Both the position numbers and the translations under genes were made by a program. A stretch of DNA of 64,000 bases from Epithemia pelagica (Eukaryota; Protista; Bacillariophyta), in the NCBI GenBank assembly GCA_946965045.2, contig OX337229.1, forward strand, positions 4,588,001 through 4,652,000, given 5' to 3'. Positions 32,432 through 38,080 of the stretch are shown here, one piece after another; the stretch's first letter is position 1, and every line of letters begins with the position of its first letter. The notes under the pieces are model-generated. The model made no database searches and was not told where the DNA came from. It saw nothing but the letters and a program-made list of their open reading frames with translations.

Positions 32432-32722
32432 ATTGGGCCTTGTATCTTTGTTGTTGTTTCGTTGTTTCCTTTCGGCAGGTACTTCAGTCAATTAGAGCAG
32501 TTGCTGTGCCTTTCTTCGTTCAATGATTCGCCAGTGCCCAATGGTATCGATACCAAGTCTCCTTCCAAACAAGGATGAACTAAAATCTTCTGGTTCGCTT
32601 GTCTTGTTGACCTTCCGAAGAGAGTTGGGTGTGATGTGTGCGAGACATTCGGATTCGGCGGAGTGTGTGGATCCCAACAGGCGAACAGAAGGCACCTGCG
32701 ACAGAAGGACAAACGGTGGACA

Positions 32723-33027
32723 GAAAACTACCATACGCAACTCACGCACGAGACGAACACCCATGTGTCGGACGAATTCCTTATCGCTATCTTTGCTACC
32801 CGGCGAAAAAAACCCATATCTCGAGGCCTTTCCCATAATTTTTGATGAAAGACAAAGACGATGGGAGTAGATGGAAAACTACCATACGCAACTCACGCAC
32901 GAGACGAACACCCATGTGTCGGACGAATTCCTTATCGCTATCTTTGCTACCCGGCGAAAAAAACCCATATCTCGAGGCCTTTCCCATAATAATTTTTGAT
33001 GAAAGACAAAGACGATGGGAGTAGATG
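32723..33027. repeat. Near-perfect 151/154-bp tandem duplication
   Basis: 32723-32873 and 32874-33027 are identical except that CCCATAATTTTT in copy 1 reads CCCATAATAATTTTT in copy 2. Confidence 0.95.
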
Positions 33028-33136
33028 GAATATTGGGTGGAACTACTCCAGCAAAGCTTGGTTTCTGGCTAATAGTTTTTCTGCAAAGTGTTATGATGTA
33101 GATGAAAAAGTCGACACCAACACGTGGGCGCATTGT

Positions 33137-33233
33137 CATTGAAGGCTTTTCAGGTCACAAAAAGTCTTGGACGTGGATGCACAATTGCACCAAATGCCCT
33201 GCTTGATTGTCACCGTCATTCTGTCTCCCAATG
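33137..33233 (-). promoter_or_regulatory. Candidate SECIS element (long apical stem) in the SelO 3' UTR
   Basis: Helix I CAUUGGGAG/CCUUCAAUG; core AUGAC (33219-33215) opposite UGAA (33152-33149); helix II GGUGACAA/UUGUGACC; AA exactly 11 nt after AUGA (33204-33203); apical stems GGGC/GUCC and UGGUGCA/UGCAUCCA. Folded by hand. Confidence 0.6.
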
Positions 33234-33335
33234 CGCACGTGCTCTACCGACCCAGCGGTAGTTGATCGACGAGGATTTGTCTTCGCGCGACAGTTTGCCA
33301 CAAGCATAAAGCTGTGGCATGTAAAATTGTCGCGC

Positions 33336-35468
33336 TTAGCTGGATCAGGACATGAATGCCGTCCCGCCCGTAGTTAATGCTTCTTCGGGCGCTCTTCGAA
33401 AGTACTTTTTGCTTTCAAACTCGGACCCCTCTTCGTAGGGCCGTTGTAAAAGGGCGAAAAGATTAAACAATTCTGCTTCCTCGTTATTGGCCGCAGAGGA
33501 ATAGGCATCGACCAACATCCACTCTCGTAGGACATACTTGGGGTTAGATGCCGCCATTTGCTTATAGGCCTCGTCAGAGCTTCTTCCACTGGCCGTCAAT
33601 GCAGTTCGCCATTCTTCCAACCATACCAACCATTCTTCCCGCAATTCTTGTGATAGTGGCTGGTAAAAGGCTGCTGCTCCCTCATAGGGTTCGTTGCTGC
33701 TCAAATCAAGTGATGAGAGCATGGCACTGTAGTCCTCCGACGAAGCAAAATCTCGTAGTATGTAGGATAGTCTCCTCCAAAACACGGTCCAGTCGGTACG
33801 AGACTTTCGCATCAACGGTTCCAGGTTTTGCCACACGTCATCCCCCACGTCTTGATCAATTTGGAATCCCAACTTGATTCGGAAGACCTCATCAATCTTG
33901 CGTTCAAACACTAGTTTGGCGCGATCCAAAAATTCCTTGCGGACAGGAACCGGGCTGTCGTCGCCCCGAGCGGCGCTAATGACCATACCAACGGATTCGA
34001 CCAGAATCCCATAGTTGGCATAGCCTGCGGACGGCTGATTCATGAATCCAAAGTGATTGCCCGAGCCAGTCCATTTGGCAAAGATGGGATTATACTCCTC
34101 CATCCATCCAAAGGGACCGTAATCCATGGTACGGCCGGCTACCAAGTTGTTGTCGGCATTGAAGTTCCCCTGCGCAAAGCCAACCCGAATCCAGCCCGCC
34201 ACCATGGAAGAAATTCGTTCGGCCGAGAGTGTCAACAAGGTTTCGGCGGCTTTACCAATGTTCCGTGTTTCAATATTGAGGTCGTAGGCCTCCTTTTTAA
34301 ATTCCCTGTAACACACATGCCAAATCAAATCTTCCAGCTCTTTCCATTGACTGGTCGAGGTATCAAAAGGCGAATCTCGCGTGTTGTTTTCGGCACTGGC
34401 CCGTTCGGCTCGACGTGCAAAGAGGTCAAAGTGACCAACGCGGGAGAAACTTGGTGCCACACGACAGGTTATGGCTGCCTTTTCGGTAATGAGAATGTTG
34501 GGATCCGCCTTTTGATTTCGGAGTTGCTGAATGATTTGTTTTCGTTGATCCACGGGATATGCGGCCAGTCGAGGATCGTCCATACCTGGCAATCGCAGTT
34601 TGGCATCGTCGCTGTACCACGGTCGTTGAATGGTATCCTTCTCGCTGACAATGAGTGACAAGGCTCGCGTGGTGGGTATTCCCAGATAGTGCATGGCCTC
34701 ACTGGCCAAAAACTCCCGAATGCTGGACCGCAAAACGGCTCGACCATCGGCACCCCGATGAAAGGGAGTGGTGCCGGCCCCCTTGAGTTGCAATTCGTGG
34801 CCCCGAAACTCGGCAATGCTAATGGCCCGCCCATCACCATATCCATCTCCTGTTCCATAGGGACAATTGTTGGTGTATCGTGTTCCCATAATGGACAAGG
34901 CATAGGGCGTAGCCCATGTTTCGCCCAAGATAAGATTGCCCGACACAAAGTTGACAAAGTCTGTCGATTCCACTTGTGCCTTGGACAATCCCAAGAGATT
35001 TTCTGCCACGTCAGGACTGTGTAGGACGAGGCGGGGTTCTCGGAGCCCAGAGGGCTTGACAAGAACATAATGACCATTGAAGACAGGACGCCGCGTACGG
35101 TTGTCATCATCGTCGTCGAGTCGTTCACGACCTCGACTCTTTTTCAAGTTGTCGGCTGTTTCGGGTGACAATTGTCGAACCCATGAATTATCCAAGACGG
35201 CTCGAACGGAATCTAAGGATGTTGTTTCTTTGTCTGAGGTGGTTGTCGCCGATTGAAAAGCCGCTTCCGCATGGGTTTTCGTTGAAGTTGACATGGAAGA
35301 CATGTTGCGTGAAAGTGGTGGTTGGATCCAAGCCACGGCTGACGACGAGCAGCAAATAGATAAGAATGCCGCAAACAGAGGAGGGTAGTAAGGGGATCGA
35401 ACGGTCGTTCTCCAGTTGGTGCTTGTACTTTGGGGTTTTACCAAATGCATTGACTGTCTCACAAGCAT
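33336..35468 (-). CDS. SELENOO: Selenoprotein O (SelO/YdiU protein adenylyltransferase) with C-terminal selenocysteine, ~710 aa
   Basis: YGDGRAIS, ELQLKGAGTTPFHRGADGRAVLRSSIREFLASEAM, GFAQGNFNADN, TMDYGPFG and NPKYVLREW are SelO motifs. The 3' end reads ATG TCC TGA TCC AGC TAA, so TGA 33347-33345 is read as Sec. Start 35468 or 35450. Confidence 0.92.
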
Positions 35469-35656
35469 TGTCGTCAACGAACGGGCGCTGCCACTGCAAT
35501 GGGAGAGCGTCCACTGGGATGATGAGAGTGGATTATTTTGGCAAGCCCAATGATTCACCAGCGTCTGTTTGGTGAGACACGTTCTTGTAAGGCCTTGTCT
35601 TCGTTGTAGTTTCAAGACCGATCTCACCGCGCTAGCACGTTTCCAATCAGACAACT

Positions 35657-35842: not shown

Positions 35843-36316
35843 ATGAGACGTCGATTTTCTCGTGAATAGAGCTATGTTTGCGTCATTTTGGATATATCTG
35901 AGGATGACGTCATCCACATTCCACAAGGCAACCGGAAATGCTCGCGGAGGAGGTCGCACATAAAGGTATTTGCTGGGGTCGCACATGCCAACAGTGACGT
36001 TGAAGAAGAAGAAGAAAAAGACGCACCATGAGACGTGATAGTTTTGGAGTGATCAGCAAAACAGGAGTACCAACGATGTGTTGGAGACTTTACCAAGTAC
36101 CGGTGTCTGCGCATTAATATAGGAAGATGGAGTCATCGTGGAAAAAACTACAGTTACGGGAGAGGTTGGAGTTGCCACGACAGAATGGATGGGAATGGAC
36201 GGGACGATGGATATGGATGGATGTTGGGCAAGACACAGCTATGCTGTCACAAAGCAATTTGATCGCAGTCCTCTCATTAAAAATTCTTGCTACTTCAGTG
36301 AAAGTACTTGCCTACC

Positions 36317-38080
36317 ATGATGACAACGTTTGAAAATGCGGATCGTCACCATCGACGCCGTGCCGACCGAGAGCGCCATTTGCATGCCATGGAAGACATT
36401 GTTCGGAGTTCGGATATTCTTTCGAGTCCTACCATCGAGGAAGCACCCGCCGCTGCCGTCGATGTCTTGGTCGGTGAGCCGCTCGCCAAACAGGAAGTGA
36501 GCAATGGCCGTGAAAAAGGCAAACGGGCAAGACGGGGAGGGTTCAAACAAGAGAAAGCACTCCCTCTAGTGTGCGGTGCCATTGTAGTACTTGTTCTTTT
36601 GTTGACGGTAACTTTGTCCTCGAACAACAAGGGGGATGATGAGGACGGAAACGTCGCCCGAGACAAGGCACAAGAAGCGGAATCCTTGAAACGTTACATG
36701 AGTTTGTTCTCACAAATCTTGGATTGGGAAGTTACGAACAGGACTGTCCTTGAAGACCAAGAGAGTTCCGCCTCCAAAGCCTTACATTGGTTGGCCTATG
36801 AAGATTTGGAAACGGTTCATTTTGAAAATATTCGCACACGTTTTGCTTTGGCCACCCTCTATTACAGTTCCTTTCACAACGAGTCGGAATGGGAGACGTC
36901 TCAATATTGGCTTTCGTCTTACCCCGTCTGCTTTTGGCACGGAATTGAATGCATTGGAGAACGTGAAGATGACATTGGTTTGGTTAGGGGTTTGAATCTT
37001 TCCTCTAATAACCTTGTCGGATCCATTCCGCCCGAACTCTCTCTCCTTCAAAAGGACATTCAGGTGTTGGACTTGTCTTTCAACTATCTCTGGGGAAGTA
37101 TCCCGGATGAAATTGGACGAAGTATGGTGAATCTCCGTCATGTCTACCTTGGTCCCAATCGCCTCTCGTCGGTCATTCCCCAGTCACTTTTTGACTTGCG
37201 CCATTTGACTCACTTGTACCTGGATAGCTGTCGTCTCTCTGGAACCCTCCCTCACTCGATTGGCCTCTTGACCAACCTCCAGGGCCTCGCGATCCACGAT
37301 AATTACTTTACTGGTTCGATCCCTCCGGAAATTGGGCAATTGACCGCATTACGAGTTTTGAACTTGGACGTGAACGCTTTGACTGGGTCCATCCCAAGCT
37401 CTATCGGATTCCTCACAGGGTTAGTGGATTTGCGTCTCAACAATAATCACATGACTGGTACGGTACCGGCCGAGCTTTCTCGTTTGTCGTTGCTGGAAGT
37501 GCTATATCTTGGGGACAATGAACTTGCTGGGAACTTGGAGGCTATTGACTTTGTCATGATGCCCTTGTTGGGTGACATTCAACTCCAAAATAACTTGATG
37601 GAGGGCACCATTCCAGAGTCGGTGGGATTCTTAGCTTTGCTGGAAACGCTCTACTTGGATAGAAACTTGCTGCATGGGCCGATTCCTCCATCATTGGGAA
37701 ATGACCTATTTCTACAGGCATTGTGCTTGTCCAACAATAGCTTGGTGGGTCCCATCCCTTCCCAGCTCGGGCGCCTTTTCAAACTGTTGCACTTGAAAGT
37801 GGACCAAAACGACTTGACTGGAGAGATTCCTGTTGAGATTGGAAATCTTGTCGAGTTGAAGACACTTTGGGTCCACAACAATACATTGGTCCGGTCCATT
37901 CCCATGCAAGTTGGGGGCATGTCCAAGCTTGAGACGGCTCGTTTTCATGGAAACTCCATCACGGGCGTCGTTCCCACTGCTCTTTGCAACAATGAATCCA
38001 CTCCGTTCCTTGCCGATTTGACGACGGATTGCAAGCGTGGAAAAGTGTTTTGCCCGTGTTGCTCGTTGTGCTACGAGTAA
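36317..38080 (+). CDS. Single-pass membrane leucine-rich-repeat protein (diatom-expanded receptor-like family)
   Basis: TM LPLVCGAIVVLVLLLTVTL; N-cap ALATLYYS…W…CFWHGIEC; about 13 plant-type LRRs (LxLxxNxLxGxIP); C-terminal DC…CPCCSLC. No kinase domain. Confidence 0.9.
   Translation: MMTTFENADRHHRRRADRERHLHAMEDIVRSSDILSSPTIEEAPAAAVDVLVGEPLAKQEVSNGREKGKRARRGGFKQEKALPLVCGAIVVLVLLLTVTLSSNNKGDDEDGNVARDKAQEAESLKRYMSLFSQILDWEVTNRTVLEDQESSASKALHWLAYEDLETVHFENIRTRFALATLYYSSFHNESEWETSQYWLSSYPVCFWHGIECIGEREDDIGLVRGLNLSSNNLVGSIPPELSLLQKDIQVLDLSFNYLWGSIPDEIGRSMVNLRHVYLGPNRLSSVIPQSLFDLRHLTHLYLDSCRLSGTLPHSIGLLTNLQGLAIHDNYFTGSIPPEIGQLTALRVLNLDVNALTGSIPSSIGFLTGLVDLRLNNNHMTGTVPAELSRLSLLEVLYLGDNELAGNLEAIDFVMMPLLGDIQLQNNLMEGTIPESVGFLALLETLYLDRNLLHGPIPPSLGNDLFLQALCLSNNSLVGPIPSQLGRLFKLLHLKVDQNDLTGEIPVEIGNLVELKTLWVHNNTLVRSIPMQVGGMSKLETARFHGNSITGVVPTALCNNESTPFLADLTTDCKRGKVFCPCCSLCYE

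Follow-up and report, generated by a model that had tools for sequence, protein, structure and literature searches.

Sec-type SelO has been described from Ostreococcus and a red alga, with SelO of T. pseudonana seen only in part (Lobanov et al. 2007, PMC2375036). Sec was later placed in the SelO proteins of Metazoa, Ostreococcus and stramenopiles, and the Sec at the Uxx end was found to be mis-annotated in the T. pseudonana and P. tricornutum entries (Dudkiewicz et al. 2012, PMC3281104). Because such entries were already listed in that work, a Sec-type diatom SelO is not new in kind. The gene described here has in common with the Sec-type SelO genes of algae and stramenopiles the SelO kinase-like domain and a single Sec, at a Uxx end, that is annotated as a stop; it comes from another species, of an Epithemia-like lineage. 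In the literature that we searched, no description was found of the 3'UTR layout of Sec-type SelO, which here consists of a stem that begins on the base right behind the true stop (+1), a linear motif and a SECIS-type element.

Human SELENOO and bacterial SelO/YdiU (PDB 6eac, 6k20, 6iii) belong to the same fold family as the diatom protein and have the same active-site motifs, and in all of them a Cys or Sec stands three residues from the C-terminus. Human SELENOO has a CxxU, whereas the residue at −3 in the diatom SelO is Phe. In Pseudomonas SelO, a regulatory disulphide links the C-terminal Cys to a Cys of the activation loop (Cys272-Cys476; PMC8097203), and the matching activation-loop position in the diatom protein is not Cys. 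The human and yeast SelO proteins are mitochondrial, whereas the diatom SelO carries a signal-peptide-like presequence.

For the RNA, the closest described elements are mammalian. Proximal stem-loops (PSL) open the 3'UTR of most mammalian mRNAs encoding a C-terminal Sec, including those of SelK and SelO (Cockman et al. 2019, PMC6844570). In SelS, a conserved linear element, SPUR, lies behind the PSL and raises UGA recoding (PMC6844570; review PMC8704476). Deletion of the SelS PSL did not lower recoding (PMC6844570). The diatom stem-loop resembles the PSLs of SelS, SelK and SelO in standing at the start of the 3'UTR of a gene whose Sec codon is 1-3 codons before the stop, but it is anchored exactly at +1, and the likeness to PSL and SPUR is one of layout, with no sequence relation found. 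Like the SRE of SELENON (review PMC8704476), it lies a few nucleotides downstream of the Sec-UGA; the SRE, however, is inside the coding sequence, whereas the diatom stem is in the 3'UTR and is placed by the true stop, not by the UGA.

The SelO gene and its reading frame

The window is the whole 64,000-nt stretch of Epithemia pelagica DNA that was analysed. The coding features of the SelO gene in it are as follows.

33336-35468, minus strand: SelO coding sequence, including the putative Sec codon, Ser-Ser and the true TAA (ORF list, Pfam, PDB matches, orthologue alignment)
35331-35450, minus strand: presequence, 40 residues from the second ATG (translation, N-terminal alignment)
33345-33347, minus strand: in-frame TGA, the antepenultimate codon, read as Sec (TGT/TGC in this column in Cys forms; TGA conserved)
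33336-33344, minus strand: TCC AGC TAA, read as Ser-Ser and the true stop (S-S-stop conserved across loci)

The mechanical ORF extends over 33345-35654 and ends at the TGA at 33347-33345. Its first ATG is at 35468, and the database model P0001 (701 aa) begins at the second ATG, at 35450. The ORF matched Pfam PF02696 (SelO) with 211.4 bits against a cut-off of 22.8, and SelO/YdiU chains of the PDB matched it at E 2.5e-43. A search of the 60.5-Mb, 23-contig genome found SelO as a single copy. The best 120 homologues were all diatom-like; the best named match was that of Epithemia clementina with 76% identity, and further named matches came from Seminavis, Nitzschia, Cylindrotheca, Fistulifera, Phaeodactylum and Pseudo-nitzschia. 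Because the protein is collinear with 17 diatom orthologues, no intron is required. The active-site motifs GDGRA, LKGAG (with its Lys), N-x-D-N and DYGPFG align with those of E. coli YdiU and P. syringae SelO and are invariant across 18 diatom SelO proteins. This diatom has one SelO gene, and it is nuclear.

Upstream of SelO, in head-to-head orientation, there is a 590-aa leucine-rich-repeat gene (window 36308-38080, plus strand). Epithemia clementina has this gene in the same arrangement with its SelO (L008:383-2155), so that the order of genes is locally conserved. Between SelO and the next ORFs, just downstream of the SECIS-type element, there is a direct duplication of about 150 nt (window 32716-33030), the copies of which are 95-100% identical at a spacing of 151-154 nt. 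Among the other loci, one metagenome contig carries two SelO genes in tandem (L017:943 and L017:3511), both of Sec type and each with the stem, the motif and the SECIS core, and Rfam SNORD24 matched upstream of the Phaeodactylum SelO locus (L010:31-116) with 47 bits against a gathering score of 41.

In-frame TGA, Sec machinery and the SECIS-type element

At its 3' end, the SelO frame on the minus strand reads ACG GCA TTC ATG TCC TGA TCC AGC TAA, with the two Ser codons at 33344-33339 and the TAA at 33338-33336. An earlier note on this DNA, made from the letters alone, had claimed that the TGA at 33347-33345 is followed by TCC AGC TAA, that it sits at the x-(U/C)-S-S-stop position of SelO, and that standard annotation would truncate the protein there. 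The minus strand reads as claimed, and the comparison with orthologues bears out the rest. About 100 of the 120 closest homologues are annotated with the C-terminus ...GGTAFMS, and 11 end ...FMSCSS. Because of these 11 Cys forms, we can say that the Cys column coincides exactly with the TGA and that the same two serines stand behind it. The same ...FMS end is given for P0001 and, in NCBI/UniProt, for the proteins of Seminavis, Nitzschia, Fistulifera and Phaeodactylum.

At the DNA level, TGA-Ser-Ser-stop recurs in at least 23 orthologous loci that are not identical to one another, far more often than chance would allow; about 17 of these are metagenome loci, and the others come from Epithemia, an ENA relative, Phaeodactylum, Seminavis, Nitzschia and Fistulifera. 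In four Cys-form loci the codon is TGT or TGC. TGA or TGY in this column is what the earlier note had expected from an alignment of diatom SelO C-termini. These counts bear directly on one alternative, in which the TGA would stand for a TGY Cys codon that was misassembled or was recently hit by a disabling mutation. The TGA is indeed one base from TGT or TGC, but the same TGA recurs in all of these non-identical loci, from independent assemblies and metagenomes; the comparative data thus effectively refute this reading, and its chance appears negligible.

It could also be argued that the TGA is a real stop, that the protein ends ...AFMS, and that the bases after the TGA are kept for RNA-level reasons such as the downstream stem, given that every gene caller ends the protein here and that a conserved RNA stem starts a few bases downstream. 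However, the pair of Ser codons varies among the TGA loci (TCC AGY, TCT TCG, TCC TCG and TCT TCA, followed by TAA or TAG), while the S-S-stop peptide is constant over all the TGA loci compared. A switch between AGY and TCN costs at least two base changes, and selection therefore seems to act on the translated product past the TGA. In addition, the Cys forms carry the same ...FMSCSS end, the stem begins only past the TAA, and a SECIS-type element and the Sec machinery are present, leaving a real stop a very slight chance. A UGA aligned with Cys in homologues and coding conservation past the UGA, the features that mark a eukaryotic selenoprotein, are thus both found at this locus, together with the Cys or Sec third from the C-terminus (Uxx/Cxx end) that marks the SelO family. 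Judging from these alignments, the TGA at 33347-33345 almost certainly encodes Sec.

The earlier note had also proposed the Sec machinery of the genome as a check, and both tRNA-Sec and eEFSec were found. There are two tRNA-Sec genes, scoring 77 and 74.6 bits against a cut-off of 47, and ARAGORN calls both of them tRNA-SeC with the anticodon TCA. A gene for SepSecS is present. The eEFSec gene, on contig 1, was found via the eukaryote-specific domains PF21208 and PF21131; the bacterial selB model TIGR00475, tried as a probe for eEFSec, mainly matched EF-Tu and EF1A genes. The eukaryotic PSTK model gave a weak match of 35.8 bits, below its cut-off. At a distance of about 1.5 kb from one of the tRNA-Sec genes (contig 16, region 1365050-1367615) there is an ORF that was ruled out as eEFSec, being EF-Tu-like.

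Two further genes of this genome have an in-frame TGA. That of SPS2/SelD (contig 11, 775690-776631, plus strand) contains one, in the context L-K-G-TGA-A-C-K-I-P-Q; a TGA in the LKG-U-ACK context of SPS2 is, we take it, at the known active-site Sec position. The thioredoxin reductase gene (contig 4) ends GGC TGC TGA GGC TAA, that is, with the classical G-C-U-G end.

Downstream of the SelO stop, a candidate SECIS was located with the following parts.

33128-33236, minus strand: SECIS-type hairpin (folding and conservation of the core)
33236-33229 with 33135-33128, minus strand: helix I, GCGCATTG with CAATGCGC, 8 bp, outside the internal loop
33219-33216 and 33151-33150, minus strand: ATGA and GA of the core, respectively

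The ATGA starts 117 nt past the TAA and the GA lies 68 nt beyond the ATGA. Helix II begins GGT.ACAA / TTGT.ACC, an AA follows 12-13 nt behind the core, and a mini-stem forms the apex. A hairpin of the form that defines a SECIS, with AUGA ... AA ... GA and a kink-turn, is therefore predicted in the 3'UTR at 33236-33128. With 7 of 9 pairs, the helix II of the window is equalled by 21% of shuffles; because a lone helix II is weak against shuffles, the case for a SECIS rests on conservation. The two closest relatives share the blocks AGAATGACGG and CCTGAA without a change, whereas their helices I and II differ and yet still pair. The arrangement GAATGAC...hairpin...T-GA was seen in 12 of 12 pennate-diatom-type orthologues, 85-188 nt after the stop. 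Over these 12 orthologues, the first seven positions of helix II were 78.6% paired, as compared with 36-49% when the partner strand was slid; the pairs were counted by a core-anchored script because the MAFFT alignment of the hairpins was out of register. The GAATGAC...T-GA core with a 7-bp helix II is also present in the thioredoxin reductase 3'UTR, 136 nt after the stop, and GAATGAC was not found in the 3'UTR of any Cys-form locus (0/4).

The Rfam SECIS models gave no match in the 3'UTR of the window or in seven orthologous records (eight loci, as L017 carries two). Because the SelO of Phaeodactylum, which is of Sec type in the literature, was missed too, we regard these misses as a limit of the models. 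A strict SECIS script (one mismatch allowed) found nothing, and relaxed versions gave the candidate hairpin. In the distant algal Sec-type SelO loci L026, L028, L032 and L036, GTGA takes the place of ATGA in the core of the best SECIS candidates, which lie 87-210 nt after the stop, e.g., GTGA-C-GCGACGG ... CAGTCGC-C-GA.

The UGA might be read through by a near-cognate tRNA (Trp, Cys or Arg) and not by Sec-tRNA, as it is general knowledge that a stable structure soon after a stop can promote ordinary readthrough (review PMC8704476). Against this stand the downstream SECIS-type element with the same core as in thioredoxin reductase, the loss of this core in the Cys forms, and the homologous column itself, which holds Cys, the usual counterpart of Sec; we give near-cognate readthrough a slight chance. 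The best explanation of the whole, which we hold with high confidence, is a SelO gene with a Sec-decoded TGA and a protein that ends ...GGTAFMSUSS instead of ...FMS. From these sequences we infer that Sec is actually inserted at the UGA.

Stem at the first base after the true stop

As judged by sequence comparison, the new part of this locus is a conserved, predicted RNA stem right after the real stop codon, followed by a linear motif.

33285-33335, minus strand: proximal stem-loop (covariation, positional scan)
33335-33328 and 33292-33285, minus strand: 5' arm GCGCGACA and 3' arm TGTCGCGC of the stem, enclosing a loop of 35 nt
33273-33284, minus strand: conserved purine-/A-rich linear motif GAAGACAAATCC, consensus G-N-R-K-A-N-A-A-A, directly after the 3' arm

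This layout of stem and motif was found in 11 of the 12 pennate-diatom-type Sec-form orthologues. In the shared layout, the stem starts at +1 (plus or minus one base), the loop is 8-115 nt long, and the 3' arm ends ...CGC and is followed by the motif. In the stem alignment (A4), 91.8% of cells were paired, against 23-58% in slid controls, and 8 of 10 pairs had compensatory changes (22 cells); none of 500 shuffles reached the covariation score. A positional scan was run over 23 Sec-type loci, which took in more distant algal lineages with arms unrelated in sequence and which are not 23 independent cases because some are close relatives. Uninterrupted stems of at least 7 bp were present at +1 in 65% of the loci, as against 17% one base earlier, on the last base of the stop, and they were found in 12% of 40 control ORFs.

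Stem and motif are missing from three of the four Cys-form loci. The Cys-form SelO L107 (TGC; 2127-2200) has a relic of them (...CGACTACAAAT), without the GAATGAC core; it looks like a recent Sec-to-Cys conversion in which the recoding signals are decaying. No clear combination of stem and motif was found for the Phaeodactylum SelO.

A stem at +1 is also predicted outside SelO. In the thioredoxin reductase gene, whose 3' end with these elements occupies about 2473844-2474023 of contig 4 (minus strand), GCCCTTCGA / TCGAAGGGC would form 9 bp without a mismatch from +1 after the TAA, and the stem-loop as a whole has a folding energy of -36 kcal/mol. Because the spacer between the UGA and the stem is 6 nt in thioredoxin reductase and 9 nt in SelO, the position of the stem appears to follow the true stop.

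Decoding of Sec would take the usual eukaryotic route, in which eEFSec and Sec-tRNA would be recruited to the UGA through the SECIS. With the UGA or one of the next codons in the A site, the stem would lie against the front of the ribosome; it may slow translation there or influence how the mRNA is folded locally, letting Sec insertion compete with release. The motif after the stem may act like SPUR. Stem and motif together probably tune Sec decoding.

We propose, tentatively and as a possibility that we would not yet call probable, that a dedicated accessory element belongs to the C-terminal-Sec genes of diatoms and of other algae. It would consist of the +1 stem and, in pennate-diatom SelO, also of the motif, would favour Sec insertion over termination where the UGA stands just one or two codons ahead of the true stop, and would be the algal counterpart of PSL and SPUR. 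In the literature searched, the coverage of which is incomplete, we found no description of an algal stem of this type. If the proposal is true, such an algal counterpart would be either very old or convergent.

Enzyme function, targeting and annotation

Because the active-site motifs are kept, transfer of AMP from ATP to protein side chains is expected, and the diatom SelO is most likely an AMPylase like the bacterial, yeast and human proteins. Its C-terminal Sec is most likely a redox-sensitive regulatory residue. As there is no Cys at the activation-loop position and −3 is Phe, so that a CxxU cysteine is absent, as the earlier note had also claimed, the Sec must act alone or with another partner. 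Two invariant Cys residues, at positions 196 and 329 of P0001, are candidates for a selenenyl-sulphide with it.

The hydrophobic N-terminal stretch ending AVA before Trp, to which that note had drawn attention, is present in the translation. The presequence starts with basic residues, continues with a hydrophobic core and ends ...SSSAVA before the Trp, and a Ser/Thr-rich stretch follows; about 19 residues precede the hydrophobic core, which is an unusually large number. By the rule for diatom plastid proteins, a signal peptide and a cleavage site are followed by F, W, Y or L and then by a transit-peptide-like region. Similar sites are seen in many orthologues, one of which reads ...ASAFAP..., and a crude script found a cleavage-type site in 20 of 44 orthologues and in 15% of shuffles. 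The sequence thus fits a diatom plastid presequence, and targeting to the plastid is plausible. Plant SELO is reportedly chloroplastic. As a rough estimate, the plastid has an even chance of being the destination of the diatom protein, with the mitochondrion and other locations each about half as probable as the plastid.

With the Sec reading, SelO would be annotated three residues too short, and without the residue that is probably redox-active, in this genome and in the entries from Epithemia, Seminavis, Nitzschia, Fistulifera and Phaeodactylum. The same C-terminal correction would apply to roughly a hundred metagenomic diatom proteins.

The Sec forms, with +1 stem, motif and SECIS, and the Cys forms that lost them would make a clean comparative system. 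Their comparison addresses how ribosomes distinguish a Sec-UGA from a stop codon two codons on. P. tricornutum is a transformable diatom with a SelO orthologue, so this question could be tested directly.
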